In this document: piece after piece, positions 3,321 to 43,864 of the stretch
Position numbering within the stretch: position 1 is the first letter of the stretch
How the letters are laid out: each line of letters begins with the position of its first letter
DNA from: Histomonas meleagridis 2922-C6/04-290x
Taxonomy: Eukaryota > Protista > Parabasalia
Direction of reading: 5' to 3'
NCBI GenBank assembly: GCA_020184695.1
Contig: JAANOX010000096.1
Coordinates: 1 to 64,000, forward strand
Length of the DNA stretch: 64,000 nt
The notes under the pieces: model-generated
Databases searched by the model: none
What the model saw: only the letters and a program-made list of their open reading frames with translations
What the model was told of the DNA's origin: nothing
Program-made: the position numbers and the translations under genes

Positions 3321-5300
3321 ATGGGAAATAGTCAAACGCAAATCAAAGAAGAAAATATAGATTCAATAGGAATGTTACAACAAATAGAAAATTATATCTT
3401 TAAAATGAACGAAAATAATATTCCAGAAACAGTTGAATCAACATTATTTATTAAAACCCATCAATATCCATATTCATTTAAGCTTATAATTTGTCAATTA
3501 CTTTATTCGTATTTTTAAATGGGAAATGAAAATATTCAATTAGTTTTTGAATATATAAAATTATTTAAAATGAAAGAAGAAGAATTATATAAGGAAAATA
3601 AAGATACAAATAATGAAACGAAAGAAGATAATATCATTAATATTTTTACAGATTTTCTTTTTAATTTTGAAACACAAGAATCGAATTATATTCTCGAAAG
3701 ATTAACGGAAAATAAAATAATTGAAGAAAATAAGATCAGATATATAAACTCGTTGTTATTTATTCACTATAAAAGAAAAAGCGAAATTAAAAATATAAAA
3801 TCTAATTTTCTACAATCAATTTTAGATAATTACAAAGAGCTTTCGAAGAATGATTTTGCACTTCATAAGCAATTGATTAAAGAAGGACATAATCCAAATG
3901 AAATTGCAAAAATAATTCGAAATGATGAAATAGAAAAACTTCAAGAAATATCATCACAAACAAATTTTGATTTTAATCAAACAATTAAACCATCACTTTA
4001 TGAAAGTTGGATTTGTTTTTTATTATAATTATGAAATACTTTCATTTCTAATTGATAAAGAAAATAAAAATTTTGAGGAACTTATCAAAACTTCGATTAA
4101 AACTGGAAATATATTTTTATTTAAATATTTTGTAAATAATAATATAGATAAAATCCCTAAAAATGTTTTAAGTTTAATTTTAATTTCAAGAAATAAAGAA
4201 CTTTTTAAAGATATTCTTAAAAATAAATTTATATTGATTAAAAGTAATGATGATATTTAATTAATTTATTTATAGTTTTATATCAAAAATTTAATAACAT
4301 TTTATTTAATTATTTTATTTACAAATTATAAATAATTTTAATTTTAGTTCTACAGAAATGTATCAGTTCTTATTCAAGCAAAAAGCAATAGGAATTAATG
4401 CTAATACAGCACTTATGTATGCATCATCACGTGGTCGTACAGAAATAGTTAAATTACTTCTTGAACAAAAAGGAATTGATATTAATGCTAAAAATGAAAT
4501 TTATTTTAATAATTTATTATTTCAAAATAATATTTGGAAATTATTTAAATTATTTTGGATAGCACTTATTTATGCATCTTTCAATGGTCATACAGAAATA
4601 GTAAAATTACTTCTTGAACAAGAAAGAATTGATATTAATGCTAAAGATATTTATTTGTTTTATTTTATATTGATTTTAATAATTTTCTATATCAAAATAA
4701 TATTTGGAAATCATTTCAAATATTTAGAACAGCACTTATGTATGCATCATCACGTGGTCGTACAGAAATAGTTAAATTACTTCTTGAACAAAAAGGAATT
4801 GATATTAATGCTCAAGATATTTATTTGTTTTATTTAAAATTTATTTTAATCATATTTTATTTCAAAATAATATTTGGAAATTATTTAGATTGTTTGATAC
4901 AGCATTTATGTATGCTTCTAAAGAGAATAAAACAGAAATAGTTAAATTACTTCTTGAACAAAAAGGAATTGAAACTAATGCTCAAGATATTTGTTTGTTT
5001 TATTTAAAATTTATTTTAATCATATTTTATTTCAAAATAATATTTGAAAATTATTTAGATTATTTAAATTATTTTGAACGGCATCTGAAAATGGGCGTGG
5101 AAAAATAGTTAAAATATTACTTAAACAACAAAACATTGATATAAATGCTAAAAATTTATATATTTTTCAAATAATATTTATATAAATTATTTTGGATTTC
5201 AATATAATATTTGGGGTTTATTTATATTTATTAAAACATTAATAAAAGCTCTTGAAAATGAAAGAATAAAAGTTTTTAAATTACTATTAAAAAAAAGATA
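3321..5300 (+). pseudogene. DUF3447-type ankyrin-repeat gene (gene A), damaged, with 17-nt element arrays in its linkers
   Basis: MGNSQT start; in-frame TAA at 3516-3518; IAKIIRNDEIEKLQEISSQTNFDFNQTIKPSLYE motif followed by a large internal deletion and frameshift near 4000; then TALMYAS..TEIVKLLLEQKGIDINAK repeats at 4405-5300. Confidence 0.8.
4499..5232 (+). other. Arrays of 17-nt intervening elements alternating with single codons (19 elements in 5 linkers)
   Basis: Inserts 4649-4728, 4819-4898 and 5156-5235 are each exactly 80 nt = 4x(17+3), giving D-YSGR-TAL, D-KFGD-TAF and N-NWGK-T. The linker at 4496-4558 has only 3 elements (N-EIGW-IAL). The linker from 4989 is degenerate at its 3' end. 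Confidence 0.8.
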
Positions 5301-10543: not shown

Positions 10544-12411
10544 TCAAACGAATGCTATGAATGCGCACACGGCTTTTCCATCCACATTCTTTGCATATAC
10601 TCCATACACTCCATCTCCGTCGCCACTATACGTCACCACTCCGCCGGGAACCAGCATCATCGATTTTTTCATGTCCATCAATTTCATGTACAGTTCGCTG
10701 AACTCTTGATATAGCTTATTACCTTTTGCCTTATATGTTCCATCGCTTACGACGAATTCTCCGATTGTATCCGCCGAATCATTTTTGTCAGTAATTTCGA
10801 TATCATTTTCATTATAAAAATGCGAATGCGTAACAAACATTACCATTCCGACGTCGCATCCAACTACGCCACATTTCACGAAACCATTTATTTCGTCTTT
10901 TTCTTTCCCTCCATCATCAGAGTAAATTTGATTTGGTATATCATCAATTAAATTTACATATTTTTCATGTACAATAATCAAATGACTTACAGAGTAACTT
11001 TGCTTCTTAATTAATGGAATCCATTTACCACCCAAACAGTGATTAACTTTTGTAGTTTCTTCAAAATTAACAAATATTTCACCAGGATCAATCGCTAAAA
11101 GTATTTCGTCATCCATTAAATCGATTGTTTTTTCAGGTATTGGAACTTTCCATCTCGTAGGCCTTGGTTTGTTATCAGTATTAACATTATTATACACCAA
11201 CGAAACAATTCCCATCCAAAAAATACATTTACGTGAGAATCCAATACATGCAAATGCATTTGAAGTTGTAAATTGAACTTGCGTTGAAACGATTGTAAGA
11301 TTCGTCGGATAATTAACACTTCCAGCTAAAAGTTCATTGTCACCAAAACTTTGATAATAACAAAAAATCGGCGCGCCAACACGAGATAATATATAATATT
11401 CATCAACTTCTTCATAATTTGGTGCCCTTAATTCGAATGGTACATCACCAGTGCCTTTTATGATTCGATAACGATTAAATGGCGTAACTGGTAAATAATT
11501 AATATATCCATCTTTACTAATCTTAGTAAACCCTTCTTCTGAGTCGGGAATATATTGCGTACATTCATTAGCATATGTTGGAGTTTCATACGTATAATCG
11601 GTAAGAGTGAATTTAAGATCTGATATTTTGCTGATGAACATGTGATAATTTTCCTTATTGGATTCTGAGGAGACTACAATTAAAAGACGCTCAGCAGATA
11701 TTGTCGAAAGACATCTCAAATAAAAATTTTCGAAAATTGGTATTTCTTTTTCAACATCGAAAAGTTGATGAGTGATCGGATTGTAAAGGTTAAGCCCAAG
11801 TTTCTTACGTGGGAAATCAGTGCCAACTTCGTCCTTTTGGAATAAAATACCTTTACTGGGAATTGGTGTTATATTGGGATCAAATATTTTGGAATTTTCA
11901 TCAACACATTGGATAATTAATACATCAGTTTGTCGCTCGATTCGAAATAGATAATTATATAGTACAATATAGTTTTGTCCTTCAAAGGTTTGCGCTATTA
12001 TATATGGAGATGGATGTCGTGGCATGGAGATGTTGAATACAAATGGTTTACCAGCTGATGTCAAGAATGAAATTTTGGGGTTAATATCAGAATCAGCTGT
12101 CGAAAATAAAATATTATACATTCAATGGGAAATTGCTGAGTCTTGGTTATTGTATCTTTATCCTTAACCAAAGCAAAATATGTTGTATTATCACGATTTT
12201 GAACAAAAATTTTACCATATAGAATTTTCATATTGTTTGGTAATAACACTTGATTTGAGTCAAAAAACATTGGTTTTTGTTCTTGGAAAATTGGAATTTT
12301 GTTTGTGATGTTTTTCATATCGCAATTTTGTTGTTGGTTATCTCTATTCACGTATTTAAATTCACAATTGTCTTCGATTATTTCTCCGAAAGCAGTAAAG
12401 TGGCTTTCCAT
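10544..12411 (-). CDS. Hypothetical protein (~614 aa) with a predicted 23-nt GT-AG intron at 12119-12097
   Basis: ORFs 12061..12411 and 10544..12121 overlap in different frames. Removing GTATAATATTTTATTTTCGACAG fuses them (..FPIE-S-DSDINPK..) into 615 codons. Function not recognised. Confidence 0.6.
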
Positions 12412-20056: not shown

Positions 20057-20450
20057 TGAGTCATTTTCCTTTTTGTTCAAGAAGTAATTTAACGACTTCT
20101 ATATGACCTTTCTCAGACACAATGATGTGTGCTGTTCTAAATATTTTAAATATTATTTTGAAATTCTAAATTATTAAAATAAATCCAAAATAAAACGAAA
20201 AAATATCTCTAGCAATAATATCAATTCCTTCTTGTTCAAGAAGTAGTATAACTATCTCTGTATGGCCATTTTGTGGTGCTAAAATAAGTGCTGTTTGAAA
20301 TAATTTAAATAATTTCCAAATATTATTTTTAAATATTAAATTATTTTATTTGGAAATTTTTTTAATTATTTAATACAGCACTCATAATGGCTTCTTCAAA
20401 TGGTTATACAGAAATAGTTAAATTATTTCATGAAAAAAAAATCAGATGAA
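20057..20450. pseudogene. Two head-to-head ankyrin-repeat fragments with 17-nt elements
   Basis: Minus strand: elements at 20334-20318, 20314-20298, 20204-20188, 20184-20168 and 20164-20148 around TALILAPQNGHTEIVILLLEQEGIDIIARD. Plus strand: gga [20355-20371] aat TALIMASSNGYTEIVKLF. Confidence 0.75.
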
Positions 20451-21975: not shown

Positions 21976-24111
21976 TTACTGCATCAGTATGTTCCACGTC
22001 AGCTTCCTACTCTTCGGCCGCACGCACTGCGCGGGAAGGAGCGACGGCACATAAGTTCCCTCGTGCACCAAACGAAGCGCATTTTTCTTGTCGTCGCCCT
22101 TCACCAAGAACAGCACATTTTCCGCGTTGTTAATGACTCTTTTTCCCAAAGTTATTCGGTGCATATTCACTTGCGGCACGAAATGCGCAATGACTAATGA
22201 CTTCCCGTCGTTGCATGCACTAGTGCCGGGGAATAACGACGCAGTGTGCGCATCAGCTCCCATTCCGAGCACTATTACATCGAACTTCGGAGTAACTTCT
22301 TCATTTTCCAAATTAAAATGTTTCAAAATTTCATTTTTGTATTCATCTGCGGCAGTTTCCGGAAGAATTTCACCTTTCATTCGATGAACATTTTCATTTG
22401 GAACATTAATTCTATCAAATAGACATTCTTTGACCATTCGATAATTCGATTCTTTATCATCAGGTGGAACACAACGTTCATCTACGAAGAACCAATGTAT
22501 ATTATTCACATCAATTTTCTTAATATATTTCTCATTAGTTGATATCATACTAAATATTGGTTGTGGTGTATTACCTCCTGATATAGCTATATTACAACGA
22601 CCGTTTGACTTTAACGTTCTCTCTATAATTTGAACCAATAAATCTGCCGATGTAATCGTAAATTCCATTGAATTGGTGAAGTAGTTTTTAATTGAATTGA
22701 ATTTTGTTTTCCTTTTTAAATCGCCATAAGAAATGTTTAAACCTTTTGAATACTTTATAACAAAATATTCGTCTTTAAGTATCGGCTCGATAATTCTCCA
22801 CGAAGCTTCAATCTCATCAGAGCGCGGAAAGAACGACTGGTCACCGTTAATTGCGTCCAATATTACACGTTCATAAGCGCCTCTTAATGAATATTGGCCG
22901 AATATTTTGTTATACGAAAAACTTAACGGTATTTGTTGTGTTCTAAGTCCTAAACCCGGAACTTTGACATGTTGTTTTAATGTAATTCCTTCATTCGGCT
23001 GTATCTTTATCTTTAAAATGTTCGGCTTATTGATTATATTCTCATTAAATGTCTGATGAGGTACGTCATTAAAAATTAATTTGATTTTCGACGTCTTCTT
23101 TTTAAGACATTTCCCACTAATTATATAAAATGGTACTCCTTGCCAACGCCAATTATCAATGTAAAGACGTAACACTGCTAATGTTGGCGTAGTTGAATTA
23201 GGTTTAATTCCTTTATGTTCTTTATACCCATTATATTGTCCAAGAATTACATCAGAAGTTTCTATTTGACGAATAGCATTAAGAACTTTCATTTTCTCGT
23301 CACGAATTGTTTTGGGGTTTAAATTCGATGGAGGCTCCATCGCAATGATCGATAACATTTGAAGAAGATGATTTTGTATCATATCTCTAAGGACTGTTGA
23401 TGAATCATAATAACCAACACGTTTCCCAACATCGACTGATTCAGATACAACAATTTCAACATGTGAAATGTAATTACGATTCCATAATGGCTCCCAAATA
23501 GTATTACCCCATCGAATTGTGAAGATGTTCATTACCGTTTCTTTAGCAAGATAATGATCGATTCGATATATTTGTTCTTCATTAAAATTATTATGTATGA
23601 ATTCATTAAGTTCTTTCGCAGACTTTAAATTGATGCCAAAAGGTTTCTCAATGATAATACGTGTTGAATTAGACTTAGATATATCTAATTGTCCAAGATT
23701 ACTAATAATATTTTCGATTAATGTTGGTGGCGTTGCTAAATAAATTAAAACAATTTTATAATTTTCTTTGTTAAGTTCAATTGAAAGTGATTTATATGTA
23801 TTAATATCATTATAATCACCACAAATATATGTGAAACGCTTAAAAAATACATTTAATGCTTCACATGATATATTATCAATATTAGTATCAGGTGATATAC
23901 GTGAAAATTGTTTGATTCCATTCGAATATATCTCTTCTAATTCACCAACTTTAAAATTAGTTCGTGCAATTCCTATTATTTTTGTTTTCGGATGGAAATG
24001 TGTATAACATGAAATAGTTTCAATGCTTGGGATTAGCATTCGCATAGTTAAATCACCCGAAGCACCAAAAATGACAATACAAATCGGAGTCTCTGCTAAA
24101 TTCATTGTCAT
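21976..24111 (-). CDS. G6PD-6PGL: Glucose-6-phosphate dehydrogenase::6-phosphogluconolactonase fusion
   Basis: N-terminal GASGDL, EKPFG, RIDHYLAKE and DMIQNHLLQ. C-terminal 6PGL: IAISGGNTP, FFVDERCVPPDDKESNY, LGMGADAHTASLFP, RITL. Confidence 0.95.
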   Translation of the reverse strand: MTMNLAETPICIVIFGASGDLTMRMLIPSIETISCYTHFHPKTKIIGIARTNFKVGELEEIYSNGIKQFSRISPDTNIDNISCEALNVFFKRFTYICGDYNDINTYKSLSIELNKENYKIVLIYLATPPTLIENIISNLGQLDISKSNSTRIIIEKPFGINLKSAKELNEFIHNNFNEEQIYRIDHYLAKETVMNIFTIRWGNTIWEPLWNRNYISHVEIVVSESVDVGKRVGYYDSSTVLRDMIQNHLLQMLSIIAMEPPSNLNPKTIRDEKMKVLNAIRQIETSDVILGQYNGYKEHKGIKPNSTTPTLAVLRLYIDNWRWQGVPFYIISGKCLKKKTSKIKLIFNDVPHQTFNENIINKPNILKIKIQPNEGITLKQHVKVPGLGLRTQQIPLSFSYNKIFGQYSLRGAYERVILDAINGDQSFFPRSDEIEASWRIIEPILKDEYFVIKYSKGLNISYGDLKRKTKFNSIKNYFTNSMEFTITSADLLVQIIERTLKSNGRCNIAISGGNTPQPIFSMISTNEKYIKKIDVNNIHWFFVDERCVPPDDKESNYRMVKECLFDRINVPNENVHRMKGEILPETAADEYKNEILKHFNLENEEVTPKFDVIVLGMGADAHTASLFPGTSACNDGKSLVIAHFVPQVNMHRITLGKRVINNAENVLFLVKGDDKKNALRLVHEGTYVPSLLPAQCVRPKSRKLTWNILMQ

Positions 24112-24206
24112 AAATAATAATGAGGTGACGTGACACATATTTTCAAAGGAGCCGTCAGCGGTTGAATTTATTTGATCCGACTTTCATAAAATTTATCATT
24201 CAGCTA
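24112..24206. promoter_or_regulatory. 95-bp bidirectional promoter with an Inr on each strand
   Basis: TCATT at 24123-24119 (minus, just before the G6PD ATG) and at 24196-24200 (plus, just before the 6PGD ATG). TCAYT is the known trichomonad initiator. Confidence 0.65.
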
Positions 24207-32442: not shown

Positions 32443-33043
32443 AATTTCTAACTTTACTCCCCATTTTTTTGTGAGAATAATATGTTGGAACCACTCTGTA
32501 TCTTTTTAAGGAGTTCTCAATTTTCTGAAGCTTATTGCGCATTAGTTTTTTCGCTTGTGGATGTGGGGGTATTTCATTATACCTGTTTTAAAAAATTTGA
32601 AAACATTTCTCTGCTGTCACACATAAAGAACTAATTAATGGTATATATGAAATTTTGTAATATATTATACAGAGCAAAATAGAGTAGAGTTGGAAGATTT
32701 GGCAAAACAGCGGTACAAAGAGGAAACTTAGTTAACCTAAAAAAAATAATGTCACTATAAATATATTTTAATTCAATTACTTCCTATTTACATTAAATGA
32801 AACAATTAATCGTTGAATTTATCTTTTTTAGTTATAAATATGGAAGATTTTTTTATTCGGAAAAACCAATGTTTACCAAAAAAGGAAAATCTAAAGTATA
32901 TTATGCATACTTAAGTATGTTTTTCCAATATATTTAATCAAATAATATGATTTACAAATATAGTGTTTATATTGTAAATACTGTGTTTTCTATTATATAT
33001 GTATTTTGATTCTAACTTCTTGTTGTTATTTTTTTTAAATTTG

Positions 33044-36036
33044 TTACTTTGGAAACAATTCAATAATTTCATCGTATCCACATCTTTTTGCAAAATCAAA
33101 TGCTGTTGCAAATTTTGTAAAAAAGTTCCAAAAATTTATTTAAAATGAAAAATTATTAAAACAAATTTTAAATAAAGCAAATAATTATCTTTGGTTTTAA
33201 TATCAATTCCCTTTTGTTCGAGAAGCAATTTAACTATTTCTGGTTTACGATTGAAAACAGCTGTAATAATTGCTGTACGTAATAATTAATATAATTCCCA
33301 TATCTTATTTTAAAATATTAAATTGTCAAAATAAATTTTATCTTTAGCATTAATATCAATTCCTTTTTGTTTAAGAAGCAATTTAACTACTTCTGTTTTC
33401 CAACTTTGAGTCGTCAAAATAAGTGAAGTTCTAAATAATTTATATAATTACCAAATTTTATATTCGAATATTAAATTAGTAAAACAATTTATGATAAAGA
33501 TGATCAGATATCTTTAGCATTGATATCAATTCCACTTTGTTCAAGAAGTAATTTATCTATTTCTATATATCCATTTTGAGATGCAAGTATAAGTGCTGTA
33601 TAAAATAATTTAAATGATTTCCAAATATTATTTTGAAACATCTAATTCTTATAATAAACATTAAATAAAACAGATAAATATCTTTAGCATTAATATCAAT
33701 TCCTTTGTGTTTAAGAAGCGAATTAACTATTTCTATATGATTATTATAAGAAGCAAGCATAAGTGCTGTTTGTAATAATTTGAATAATTTCCAAATATTA
33801 TTTTGAAATTTTAAATTATTAAAATAAACATTAAATTAAGCACATAATTATCTTTAGCATTAATATCAATTCCACTTTGTTCAAGAAGTAATTTATCTAT
33901 TTCTATATATCCATTTTGAGATGCAAGTATAAGTGCTGTTTGTAATAATTTAAATAATTTCCAAATATTATTTTGAAACATCTAATTCTTATAATAAATA
34001 TTAAATAAAACAGATAAATATCTTTAGCATTAATATCAATTCCTTTGTGTTTAAGAAGCGAATTAACTATTTCTATATGATTATTATAAGAAGCAAGCAT
34101 AAGTGCTGTTTGTAATAATTTGAATAATTTCCAAATATTATTTTGAAATTTTAAATTATTAAAATAAACATTAAATTAAGCACATAATTATCTTTAGCAT
34201 TAATATCAATTCCTTTTTGTTCAAGAAGTAATTTATCTATTTCTATATATCCATTTTGAGATGCAAGTATAAGTGCTGTTTGTAATAATTTAAATAATTT
34301 CCAAATATTATTTTGAAACATCTAATTCTTATAATAAATATTAAATAAAACAGATAAATATCTTTAGCATTAATATCAATACCTTTTTGTTCAAGAAGTA
34401 ATTCAACGATTTCTGTATAACCATACCAAGATGATGCATACATAAGTGCTGTATTAAATAACCTAAATAATGTCCAAATATTACTTTGAAATATTAAATT
34501 GCTAAAATAAATATCAAATAAAATAAATAAATATCTTTTGTATTAATGCCAATTTCTTTTTGTTCAAGAAGTAATTTAACGATTTCTTTATAACCATGTT
34601 GAGATGCAATAATAAGTGCTGTTTTAAACAATACAAATAATTTCCAAATATTATTTTGAAATTTTAATATAATCAAAAGTATTTTAATTAAAACAAATAA
34701 ATATTTTTCTCATTAATATCTATTTCTTCTTTTTCAAGAAGCATTTTAACAATTTTTGTTTTACCAATTCCTGCTGCTTTCATTAGTGCTGTACTAAATA
34801 TTGAAGATAATTTCCAAATAATGTTATTAAATACTATGTTATGATAATATATATTAAATAAAACAAATAAATAGACTTAGCATTAATATTAATTCCATTT
34901 TTCTCAAAGAAATACTTAAAAACTTCAAAATTGGAAAACACAGAAAATACCAAAATATTTTCAGGGATTTTCTTATCTTTAATAAAATCTAAAATAAGAA
35001 ATATTTTCCCATATCTTGCAGAAATATTAATAATATATTCATTGATTTCCATTCCTTTATCTATTAAATATTGAAGAAGTTCATAATTATTAAAATAAAT
35101 GCATACATTTCCTAACTCAGTTAAGTCAAGTTCAAATTCCTCAATCTTGTTTTCAAAAAGATATTTAAAGATTTCATTTTGATGATATTCAATTGCTGTT
35201 TTTAATGATCCTTCAAATTTTGCACCATTTTCTTTACACAAATGAATGATTTCAATGTTTCCACTTAAAACTGCATATAATCCAACATTTCTTATTTTAG
35301 AACCATTTAATAGAAGGAATTTAAAACATTTAATGGATCCAAAAATTGCTGCATATTTTATAAGTGAAACTTTAAAACATCCAAAAATAAATGGATGTTT
35401 CTCATATAATGATATATGGATTTTTTGATCAAAATCAAAATTTGCTTCTGTAGAAATTTCTTGAAGTTTTTCAACATTATCATCAAGAATTATTTTTGCT
35501 AGTTTTGAGTTAGTTCCATCATTTATATATTTTTTATGAAGTTTCCAATTATCTTCTCGAAGTTTATCTATGTTTTTCAAAAAGAAAGAATTACTTTTTA
35601 ATTTATTATTAAGTTGTTCTTCTGACATATAATGTGCAAAATATAAAGAAATATTTGTTGTAACTTTAGGTTCAATTAATTGCTGTTTAACCATCTCATT
35701 AATAAGAAAATAAGTATTTTTTGCAATAAGTTTTTTTGTAAATAGAGTCACTATATCATGTTTTTCTTCTTTAATTTTAGTTTTTCCCTTAATTTCATTT
35801 AGAAAATTGATATATATAGAAGGATCCTTGTTTTGTGATACATAAGATGAACATAATAATTCGGTTAGAATAATTTTTGAAGAATATGGAAAATGAGAAT
35901 CAAATAAATTTATTATTGTTTCAACTGAACTTACTATATTTTCTTCATTTAAACTAAAAACTATATGTTGGATTAATTGAAGAGTTTCTAAATGGGTTTT
36001 ATTTAGGTTAGAACAATAAGTTTTGTTGCTATTCAT
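33044..36036 (-). CDS. DUF3447 + 11 ankyrin-repeat gene (gene B); intact 753-aa protein if 43 non-canonical 17-nt elements are removed
   Basis: 388-codon first segment (36036-34873). The remaining 1829 nt minus 43x17 = 1098 nt = 365 codons plus TAA (33046-33044), with no internal stop, ending TAFDFAKRCGYDEIIELFPK*. Confidence 0.8.
33107..34872 (-). other. Eleven arrays of 17-nt intervening elements separated by 3-nt microexons (43 elements)
   Basis: 80-nt inserts at 34872-34793, 34702-34623, 34532-34453, 34359-34280, 34189-34110, 34019-33940, 33849-33770, 33679-33600, 33509-33430 and 33186-33107. One 63-nt insert at 33339-33277 lacks the first element. Confidence 0.85.
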
Positions 36037-36118
36037 GAATATGGCCGCTGTCAAAAAATTCAATGTTGAATTCACTTTTGAGCGGTATGAATTGACAACC
36101 TCTGTTCGAACAATTTTA

Positions 36119-41491: not shown

Positions 41492-43864
41492 TTAGCTATT
41501 ATTTGACCTTTCAATCAGCAAATTAACAATTTCTGTAAATCCTTTTGAAGACGCCATATCAAGCGCTGTTTTAAATGTTTGTAAGAATTCCGATTTATTA
41601 TTTTGAAACACCACATAGAAGAAATAAAAATTTTATCATATGAAATAATATTTTTGGAATTGATATCAACTCCTTCTTGTTCAAGAATTAATTTAACTAA
41701 ATCTATTTTACCATATTTAGATGCATACATAAGTGCTGTATTAAACTTTCTTAAAAAAATCCAAAAATTACTTTGAAATAGAAGAAAATCGTTTTAATTA
41801 ATTTCAAACAAAATAATTAAATATCTTTAATATTAACATCAATTCCTTCATGTTTAAGAATCAATTTGACAATTTCAACTGGATTCCCTTGGTGTAGCAC
41901 GCATAAAATAAGAACTGTCTGAGAAATTTTTGATTAATACCAAATAATATATTGAATTATCGAATCATAAAAATAAATATCTAAAAGAACAAACGAATAT
42001 TTTTATCATTTATATCAATTCCATCTTGTTCGAGAAGTAATTTTGCAATTTCATTTTCACAATAACGAAATGCTTTCATAAGTGCTGTCTCAAATAATTT
42101 AAATAATTCCCAAATACTACAATGAATTTATAAATTATCATAATAAAATTCAAATAAAGTATATAAAAGCCTTTAACATTAATATCAATTCCGTTATGTT
42201 TAAGAAGTAATTTAACTATATCAATTTTTCCATTTCGAGTTGCAAGTATGAGTGCTGTTTCAAACAATTCAAATTGTTTCCAAATATTATTTCCAAATAT
42301 TGTATTATTCAAACAAACAACAAAAAATAAATAAAGAATATGATCTTTAGCATTAATATTAATTCCCTCTTGTTCAAGAAGTAATTCAGCAATTTCTACA
42401 TGGCCATTCTTAGAAGCGCACATAAGTGCTGTCCAAAATAATTAATATGATTACCAAATATTATTTTGAAATAGGCCATAATTCGAAAAACAAATTTTAT
42501 ATATAATAAATGATCATTTTGAGCATTAATATCAATACCTTCTTGCTCAATAAGAAATTTAATGATATCATAATTACCATTTTGAGTAGCATTTAAAAAT
42601 GCTCTTTGAAATATTTTTAATAATCTAAGAAAATTATTTTGTAATATCCTATTTTATTAAAATCAAAACAAATTGAAAAAATATTTTTATTTTTGTTGCT
42701 GACATATTTATTTCGAATAATGAAATTAAAAAGTTCTTTATTGCCTGAAAAAGTTCTGATTTCCATAAAATTTATTGAGATTGGATTTTTCCCAAGCAAA
42801 TATTTTAAAATGAATATATTACCTGTTTCAATTGAAACAATGATAAGAGAATCATTAACTTTCATTCCATTTTCGAATAAAAATGCTAAAACTTCATAAT
42901 TATGATGAATGATACATTTTTTTCCTAATTTTTCTAAGTTGTTAATTTCTTTAATTTTATTTTCATAAAGATATTTAAAGATGTCATTTCGATGAAATAT
43001 AATTGCTGCTTTATATGCACCTTCAAATGATGAATGATTCTGTTCACATAAATGAATGATTTCTTCATTTCCAACTGCAACTGCATATTTACCTGCATAA
43101 TAAACATTTGCACTGTTCATAAGTAAATATCTAAAACATTTAATTGATCCAAAAAATGCTGCATAATCAATTAATGTAACATTTTCTTCATTAATAAATG
43201 AACATCTTTCATAAAGTGATGGATCAATTATTTGATTAAAATCAAAATCATTTTTTGATGATATTTCTTGAAGTTTTTCTATTTCATCATTTCGAATTAT
43301 TAAAGCAATTTCATTTGGATTATGTCCTTCTTCAATGAATTTCTTATGAAGTTCCCAATCATTCTTTGATAGTTCTTCATGATTATCAAAAAAAAATTTA
43401 TATAAATGATTTGATTTAAATCTGCTTAATTCTTCATTTGACATATAATGTGCAAAATATGGTGTTACTTTATTTTTACAAATGTTTGAATCAGTGAGAT
43501 CGTTTTCAATTATTTTATTAAGCAAAAAATTTGATTCTTGTGAATGGATATTAAATAAAAATTGTATAAAAATGTCAATTACCTTATAATTTTCATTATT
43601 ATAAATATCTCTTTCTCTTATTTCAATTTGTTTTAAATATTCCATACCTGATTTATTAAATTCTATAATAAAACATGAATATAAAATACTACAAATTATA
43701 AAATTAAATGAATATGGAAATTTTTCATCAAAATAAAATAAGGAAGAATCTACTGATTCATTGATATTATTCTCATCTAAATATAAAATAAGCTGTTTTA
43801 AGGACATTAATTTTTGAAGCATTTCCTTGTCTTGGCTTTCTATTTGACTTTGCTTGCTTCCCAT
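41492..43864 (-). CDS. DUF3447 + 7 ankyrin-repeat gene (gene C) with 17-nt element arrays
   Basis: MGSKQS start. Ankyrin cores RAFLNATQNG, TALMCASKNG, TALILATRNG, TALMKAF, TVLILC, TALMYASKYG and TALDMASSKG are all stop-free and end at TAA 41494-41492. Linker inserts are 77, 83, 84, 80, 80, 83 and 80 nt. Confidence 0.72.
41570..42682 (-). other. Seven arrays of 17-nt elements and microexons in gene C
   Basis: 42515-42433 N-KWPGW-TAL; 42168-42089 G-EIGE-TAL; 41998-41919 N-DDGQ-TVL; 41822-41740 D-ESSGN-TAL; 41649-41570 N-NGRK-TAL. 42342-42259 needs one 18-nt element. 42682-42606 is degenerate. Confidence 0.75.

Follow-up and report, generated by a model that had tools for sequence, protein, structure and literature searches.

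Introns of metamonads possess uniform minimal lengths and a fixed spacing between branch site and 3' end (PMC6679479, PMC12316389). A census for Trichomonas yielded 63 introns, all with GT/AG ends and the shortest with 23 nucleotides (nt), and junctions without canonical motifs were discarded by the pipeline employed (PMC12316389). For Histomonas at most one intron per gene in approximately 5% of the genes was reported in the genome paper, and ankyrin genes were not mentioned (PMC8529796). Spliceosomal introns of 16–17 nt were described for mikrocytids (PMC10245619). Here, we analyzed a stretch of 64,000 nt from Histomonas meleagridis 2922-C6/04-290x (assembly GCA_020184695.1, contig JAANOX010000096.1, positions 1 to 64,000 of the forward strand), called the window throughout the text. 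Its minus strand carries an ankyrin repeat gene (33044–36036), in which the hairpin linkers between the repeats are split by tandem arrays of 17-nt elements with single codons in between. The gene is expressed, and the elements are excised from the RNA one by one at exact borders.

Architecture of the ankyrin gene

Parsing the minus strand by script, the gene was found to start with one long exon, behind which 11 ankyrin units are lined up, each composed of a linker and a 90-nt exon (T-A-L ... I-N-A-K-D). Ten linkers measured exactly 80 nt and one measured 60 nt, each of them made up of four (or three) times a 17-nt AT-rich element plus one codon, with 43 elements in the gene. This arrangement had been proposed in an earlier note and was reproduced by the script, as was the stop-free protein of 753 amino acids (aa) obtained after removal of all 43 elements. 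The resulting open reading frame (ORF) comprises 766 codons from a GTG at 36075 or, counted from the first ATG (36036), 753 aa, and terminates with a TAA at 33046–33044. The retained hairpin codons encode NSGS, KKGK, DNGN, NDGQ, NKGQ, NDGQ, NKGQ, NDGY, INGR, (K)NGR, and KFGA. As a control, all 18 possible registers of the retained triplets were compared. Only the register proposed in the note gave 0 stops together with Gly in 10 of 10 third slots and hydrophilic, ankyrin-like residues. The ankyrin-like character of the linkers with Gly in third place was confirmed. Other stop-free registers yielded runs of I/F/L/Y, as usual for AT-rich non-coding DNA. Stops upon reading through the elements, likewise noticed before, were present, for example N-I-Y-L-F-stop at 34702. 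Searching Pfam with the N-terminal ORF of the gene identified Ank_2, Ank_3, Ank_4, and DUF3447. The pairing of Ank and DUF3447 is typical for parabasalids, and the gene belongs to this parabasalid protein family. The parts of the gene are as follows, with the elements of each linker given in the direction of transcription.

33044–36036, minus strand: whole ankyrin coding region, ATG 36036 to stop 33046–33044; RNA contigs cover 32951–33109 and 34872–35989
34873–36036, minus strand: first exon, N-terminal DUF3447/ankyrin part, uninterrupted; RNA contigs colinear over 34872–35482 and 35454–35989 with 0 mismatches
34793–34872, minus strand: linker 1, NSGS; elements 34872–34856, 34852–34836, 34832–34816, 34812–34796; single-codon exons 34855–34853, 34835–34833, 34815–34813
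34623–34702, minus strand: linker 2, KKGK; elements 34702–34686, 34682–34666, 34662–34646, 34642–34626
34453–34532, minus strand: linker 3, DNGN; elements 34532–34516, 34512–34496, 34492–34476, 34472–34456
34280–34359, minus strand: linker 4, NDGQ; elements 34359–34343, 34339–34323, 34319–34303, 34299–34283
34110–34189, minus strand: linker 5, NKGQ; elements 34189–34173, 34169–34153, 34149–34133, 34129–34113
33940–34019, minus strand: linker 6, NDGQ, unit 6 being a recent duplicate of unit 4 (340-nt period); elements 34019–34003, 33999–33983, 33979–33963, 33959–33943
33770–33849, minus strand: linker 7, NKGQ; elements 33849–33833, 33829–33813, 33809–33793, 33789–33773
33600–33679, minus strand: linker 8, NDGY; elements 33679–33663, 33659–33643, 33639–33623, 33619–33603
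33430–33509, minus strand: linker 9, INGR; elements 33509–33493, 33489–33473, 33469–33453, 33449–33433
33277–33339, minus strand: linker 10, K-NGR; three elements 33336–33320, 33316–33300, 33296–33280, the element of slot 1 precisely absent
33107–33186, minus strand: linker 11, KFGA; elements 33186–33170, 33166–33150, 33146–33130, 33126–33110

Excision of the elements from RNA

Contigs from three RNA runs (X3, X4, X5) and one DNA run (X1) were laid out over the gene. In the intergenic bins 32634–32901 and 35984–36117 the depth of the RNA runs was almost zero, and the DNA run showed a depth of approximately 570–700 there. The clearest picture was obtained for linker 1. In all three RNA runs (X3 rec12, X4 rec20, X5 rec25) a contig matched 34872–35186 (up to 35482) and 34702–34795 without any mismatch, with exactly 8 letters between 34872 and 34795 compared to 76 nt in the genome. 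This is the number predicted by the 17+3 model, as the 3 isolated codons amount to 9 letters, the first of which is the same as base 1 of element 1. As letters remain between both aligned pieces, the missing 68 nt were not removed as one block. For linker 2 the RNA contigs ceased to match at 34702, where element 1 begins with the same base as the next codon. RNA contigs ended exactly on the predicted 3' borders of elements at 34795, 33279, 33149, and 33109, where the elements end with TT, TA, TT, and TT, respectively. In each of these four cases the base preceding the border in the genome is not the one predicted for the transcript, which fixes the border to the nucleotide. In linker 5 an RNA contig (X4 rec18, 0 mismatches) started at 34113, beside the retained codon.

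Partly processed RNAs were observed for two linkers. One RNA contig of linker 10 (X4 rec16) started exactly at 33279, and a second one (X3 rec10) lacked 33316–33300 but still contained 33296–33280. Similarly, for linker 11 one contig (X3 rec9) started exactly at 33109, and another one (X5 rec23) started exactly at 33149 just past element 2 and from there remained colinear across elements 3 and 4 as far as the 3' end. In both intermediates, X3 rec10 and X5 rec23, the upstream elements were gone and the downstream elements kept. The share of sampled words was approximately 0.5 in the RNA runs versus 0.85 in the DNA runs, which fits the absence of element-touching words from the messenger RNA (mRNA). 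Many further RNA contigs, derived from paralogs, contained 12-nt linkers of the D-x-x-G-x-T type. DNA contigs were colinear with the window over linker 1 (rec6, 34688–35186), linker 9 (rec3, 33360–33552), and linker 10 (rec2, 33213–33356). The DNA contigs kept the elements at single-copy depth, with approximately 580–730 over the elements compared to 566–612 for the single-copy flanks. Excision thus takes place at the RNA level and element by element, because RNA contigs lack the elements with exact borders, partly processed forms exist, and DNA contigs keep all of them. Before, excision or recoding at the level of RNA, translation, or DNA had been considered; the read layout decides for the first and against ribosomal hopping and DNA elimination.

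Other ways to read the linkers were tried and rejected. If each linker contained one 68-nt intron or two of the GT-AG type, the products would not be ankyrin-like; moreover, the GT positions are not conserved between units, and 8 RNA letters remain. Use of the conserved ACAG in the Thr-Ala codons as 3' splice site is incompatible with RNA contigs which hold the codon before ACA contiguous with the exon. A ciliate code or germline internal eliminated sequences (IES) were discarded, since long ORFs of the standard code fill the window and DNA contigs keep the elements. At the other end of the gene, RNA contigs of two runs ended at the same base, 32951, approximately 95 nt past the stop codon, one of them with 16 additional unaligned letters. 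This base is probably the poly(A) site of the ankyrin gene, with the 3' end of the transcript near there.

Element sequences and candidate machineries

For sequence statistics 109 distinct elements were used. All verified elements measured 17 nt, and 25 of 27 linkers examined in detail (window, L001, L032–L034) had a length of n x (17+3), i.e., 80 or 60 nt. Base 1 was a purine in 100 of the 109 elements (A 73, G 27), followed by T at base 2 (83/109), base 3 (102/109), and base 4 (95/109). An A was located at position 10 or 11 in 87 and at position 14 in 75 elements, and the last three bases were mostly TTT. Not a single element ended with AG (0/109); 79 ended with TT, the others with AT, AA, TA, or TC. 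GT at the 5' end was found for 6 of the 43 elements of the ankyrin gene and for about a quarter of the elements overall, and was more common in diverged paralogs. The motif RTWYWD, the parabasalid 5' splice motif GTWYWD with a purine at base 1, was matched by 49 of the 109 elements, compared to 12 expected from shuffled sequences (maximum 24); the strict form GTWYWD was found 16 times. The 5' consensus ATTTAT differs from the U12-type ATATCC, and no element among the 109 was recorded with an AC end. The earlier note had stated that the elements possess neither GT nor AG ends. This was correct for the 3' end, but not for the 5' end with its mostly purine-T start, and signal-free 5' ends can no longer be maintained. 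As the 5' ends resemble the parabasalid 5' splice motif, a spliceosomal origin became likelier than implied there. Allowing for border shifts, no universal terminal dinucleotide was found among 70 elements, with AT fitting at most 46 starts and TT at most 51 ends. Borders were unambiguous for 23 of these 70 elements, and their ends were mixed. RNAalifold predicted 0 base pairs for 15 diverged linkers with their flanks, and an Rfam scan of the window gave no matches.

Conservation was compared for 15–20 diverged units from the three genes of the family in the window and related loci. The least conserved positions of the linkers were exactly the proposed triplets. Between genes, identity of the 17-nt elements amounted to 0.66–0.68 (0.42–0.49 by composition), higher than that of exon third positions (0.56, with 0.41 by composition). 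Retained codons 2 and 4 did not exceed composition (0.34–0.39 versus 0.32–0.39), and the Gly codon in third place reached 0.68 versus 0.49. Judged from these values per class, the triplets behave as hypervariable residues at the tip of an ankyrin hairpin and the elements as constrained non-coding sequence.

Our favoured reading, with a probability of roughly 0.6, is that the elements are spliceosome-type micro-introns with a 3' site defined by length. Each hairpin linker contains four intervening sequences of 17 nt, in some cases two or three, which are cut singly and independently from the pre-mRNA, and ligation of the flanking single codons would restore the D-x-x-G-x-T hairpin. The excising machine would be the parabasalid spliceosome working at a minimal intron size. 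It may recognize a degenerate 5' site GTWYWD, with G1 mostly replaced by A, and a candidate branch-like A at position 10/11, corresponding to -8/-7 and near the branch A at -8 in introns of Trichomonas. Distance (17 nt, after A-T-T-T) and not AG would set the 3' cut. The two intermediates suggest removal in the order 5' to 3', which is proposed because adjacent 17-nt introns could not be engaged simultaneously. The four-element array may have been inherited via duplication of repeats and genes rather than by insertion, and single elements would occasionally be lost precisely, as introns are. The spliceosome is favoured because of the GT-type degenerate 5' end, the A located 7–8 nt before the 3' end, the uniform length, precedents of 16–17 nt, and no RNA structure.

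We are aware of the fact that several observations weigh against this reading. None of the 109 elements carries an AG end and 73 start with A, and we know of no spliceosome for which such ends are routine. With exons of a single codon between neighbouring introns, no space is left for contacts on the exon side. Position-specific conservation of the whole element, above all in slot 3, exceeds the needs of splice signals and could reflect pairing with trans-acting guides. Some linkers of paralogs can only be parsed with an 18-nt element next to long runs of T. Evidence for the junction of linker 1 consists of the number of its 8 letters and of the flanking borders, the codons themselves being predicted from the genome.

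The same observations lead to a dedicated non-spliceosomal RNA excision-ligation system with an endonuclease and an RNA ligase, possibly employing small guide RNAs which pair with slot-specific 17-mers. It is the main rival reading, which we consider clearly less likely. It would be in agreement with elements without AG and universal terminal dinucleotide, with the mixed ends of the 23 unambiguous elements, with a slot-specific conservation of whole elements above that of synonymous sites, with their confinement to one position in one gene family, and with 3-nt exons, which are awkward for a spliceosome. However, a conserved secondary structure, expected for sites of the bulge-helix-bulge or IRE1 type, was not predicted, and matches of the 5' ends to the 5' splice motif known from parabasalids are far more numerous than expected by chance. 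In addition, the more diverged paralogs often have GT, tiny spliceosomal introns are typically of one minimal length (PMC10245619), and no candidate for a guide RNA or an enzyme was identified, the Rfam scan of the window being empty. Slightly more doubtful still is its extended version, in which a previously unknown nuclear machinery of this kind measures 17 nt, reads slot-specific sequences, perhaps via guide RNAs, and keeps the four hypervariable hairpin codons of a large ankyrin family as single-codon exons which could evolve or be skipped separately.

Very improbable is an element-free form existing as DNA, with the RNA colinear to it, whether by programmed DNA elimination, as a processed gene copy, or as a strain allele. 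The RNA runs do stem from another study than the DNA runs. Nevertheless, the DNA contigs keep the elements at the depth given above, in partly processed RNA contigs some elements of a linker are removed and others retained, exon sequences agree with the window without mismatch for up to 611 nt, and both assemblies, the paralogs, and the metagenome relatives all carry elements. Hardly credible, finally, is a decaying pseudogene array with spliced contigs from intact paralogs or from assembly or reverse transcriptase artefacts, or a bypass by the ribosome: many paralog transcripts map to the repeats, a further family member in the window (gene A, see below) looks partly decayed, and template switching might be suspected from the ATTT at either end of many elements, but spliced contigs match gene-specific flanks with 0 mismatches in three runs, template switching would leave one repeat copy and need junction homology, whereas four exact 3' borders lack homology and both ATTT copies are removed, neutral decay is incompatible with a stop-free 753-aa ORF, an architecture conserved across organisms, and codon-specific variability, and bypass is unnecessary if the mRNA is already devoid of elements.

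Distribution and relation to known systems

Using the first exon as query, HMMER identified 2001 relatives at E ≤ 0.001. Gene calls of the closest relatives end with '...INxKD-I', which indicates that the gene callers stopped at the first element. This bears out the expectation that annotators would see broken genes, the public calls of relatives stopping right after '...INAKD-I'. The 17+3 periodicity was indeed present in other copies, both in paralogs and in metagenome relatives. Units of 4 x (17+3) were located on contigs of relatives from ENA metagenomes (L001, L032, L033) and from the Histomonas assembly GCA_020186115.1 (L034), which also contains a paralog of the N-terminal domain of the gene. 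A further metagenome contig with 20.6% GC (L037) has the same units, with 4 of 5 linkers of exactly 80 nt; it and other metagenome contigs appear to come from other organisms. The two sequenced assemblies, the paralogs in them, and the relatives from metagenomes all carry elements. In L035, a more divergent paralog from Histomonas, the linkers possess two or three elements, one element lies one codon further downstream, and a few linkers can only be parsed if an 18-nt element next to a long run of T is assumed. In unit 10 of the ankyrin gene, unit 2 of gene A, and L033 the element of slot 1 is missing precisely, which looks like the pattern of intron loss. More distant homologs contain ordinary uninterrupted hairpins in part of the repeats, for example P0015 of Tritrichomonas foetus. 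In this gene (L036:3720–4350, MLAK01000907.1) T-rich stretches of 138, 255, and 55 nt split ankyrin exons at the border of hairpin and helix 1; two of them start with GTTTTT and none ends with AG. Either pseudogene decay or a relationship to the 17-nt elements, as longer versions of them, could explain these stretches. A scan of JGI metagenomes with the slot-3 pattern gave 30 matches, all by chance, and a word-based protein search with a piece of exon 1 found one relative only and no transcript-derived protein of the ankyrin gene.

Two further family members were recognized in the window, both from the sequence alone.

41570–42682, minus strand: gene C, second family member; seven linkers of 80, 83, 84, 80, 80, 83, and 80 nt, same architecture
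4480–4898, plus strand: gene A, third family member, partly decayed; linkers of three or four elements at 4499–4558, 4649–4728, and 4819–4898

Gene C contains one 6-nt micro-exon. The first retained triplet of its linker 1 (42682–42603, minus strand) is TGA under the simple parse, and its linker 3 (42342–42259, minus strand, 84 nt) is in frame only with one 18-nt element beside a run of six T. The 18-nt cases of gene C and L035 could be true 18-mers, pointing to a looser ruler, or homopolymer errors of the assembly. Compared to the ankyrin gene, the central part of the N-terminal domain is missing in gene A (4000–4400, plus strand), the ORF being broken at 4026; one repeat joins I-N-A-N straight to T-A-L without a hairpin, and degeneration is seen in the units further downstream. 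Gene A is likely a pseudogene. An isolated ankyrin fragment without N-terminal domain was observed at 20100–20420 (minus strand), with elements resembling those of slots 3 and 4 and adjoining an inverted partial copy; it is probably a decayed family member.

The window itself is AT-rich (approximately 28% GC), with both strands packed with long ORFs of the standard code, and no transfer RNA (tRNA) genes were found in its 64 kb. Clearly eukaryotic proteins are encoded, including CYFIP, a fused G6PD-6PGL, and WD40 proteins. The fusion gene of glucose-6-phosphate dehydrogenase and 6-phosphogluconolactonase (21976–24138, minus strand) encodes 720 aa; such a fusion is known from Trichomonas, Giardia, and Plasmodium. 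Inspection of adjacent out-of-frame ORF pairs for 17-nt elements in non-ankyrin genes revealed no convincing case, and the sole other intron candidate was a 23-nt GT..AG sequence. It is located at 12119–12097 (minus strand, GTATAAT...CGACAG) and fuses the ORFs 12477–12063 and 12121–10546 in frame. The similarity of this candidate to type B introns (23–25 nt) in Trichomonas suggests that canonical GT-AG splicing occurs alongside the 17-nt elements.

Searching full texts, we found no description of 17-nt non-AG elements or arrays of single-codon exons in parabasalids. If confirmed at the read level, the elements would be among the shortest introns known and the first large set without 3' AG in a metamonad. 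They bear on the choice of the 3' site by a reduced spliceosome, made via distance rather than sequence, and test the lower size limit of an exon. We know of no other case of several single-codon exons strung together by tandem micro-introns. Standard aligners, gene callers, and intron pipelines which filter for motifs (e.g., PMC12316389) miss 17-nt elements. As such tools miss them and the calls of relatives end where the first element starts, annotation of the ankyrin proteome is probably wrong for Histomonas and related gut parabasalids, in the form of truncated genes or pseudogenes.

Comparing the elements with known systems, close similarity was observed to the short type B introns of Trichomonas (23–28 nt; PMC12316389, PMC6679479), which come from the same phylum and share the uniform minimal length and the T-rich interior. 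The GTWYWD motif is matched by 49 of 109 elements if R is allowed at base 1 (16 in the strict form), and an A is located approximately 7–8 nt before the 3' end, at the place of the fused branch site. Clear differences are the length of 17 nt instead of at least 23 nt, the missing CTAAC...ACAG motif and AG, and the predominance of A at base 1; 5' GT, 3' AG with branch motif, and length of at least 23 nt, the features of canonical parabasalid GT-AG introns, do not describe these elements. In contrast to T. vaginalis with 63 introns in total, they occur in tandem arrays with 3-nt exons in between. The tiny introns of mikrocytids, heterotrich ciliates, and chlorarachniophyte nucleomorphs are known to keep GT-AG ends. 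Introns of mikrocytids (16–17 nt, PMC10245619), heterotrichs (15–16 nt), and nucleomorphs (18–21 nt) share with the elements their narrow lengths at the lower limit of splicing, a sequence conserved across introns, and removal from RNA. Those introns reside in many genes between normal exons, whereas the elements lack AG, occur in ankyrin hairpins only, and flank single codons.

Non-canonical introns of Fritillaria and Oikopleura and non-conventional introns of euglenids interrupt nuclear pre-mRNA without GT-AG ends and are longer and of variable length, those of euglenids depending on a structure formed by pairing of their ends. Excision without GT-AG is shared with them, but here the length is fixed at 17 nt and no structure is predicted. 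Neither the conserved helix and bulge of archaeal and tRNA bulge-helix-bulge sites nor the twin stem-loops of IRE1-type HAC1/XBP1 sites were found, and colinear DNA contigs at single-copy depth differ from programmed DNA elimination as known for ciliate IES. In translational bypass (T4 gene 60, mitochondrial byps of Magnusiomyces) short non-coding inserts without splice signals interrupt ORFs as well. They stay in the mRNA, however, while the 17-nt elements are absent from RNA contigs, with 68 of 80 nt of linker 1 missing in three runs. Micro-exon genes of schistosomes and 3-nt micro-exons of animals and plants are flanked by ordinary long GT-AG introns. Symmetric micro-exons for variable surface residues are common to these systems and the ankyrin gene, where the introns measure 17 nt and four of them fit within 80 nt. 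With their narrow length class and their removal from mRNA the elements agree with ultra-short introns of fixed length, and we rate them as tiny introns of a new and extreme kind, though the chance that they are something categorically new is real.

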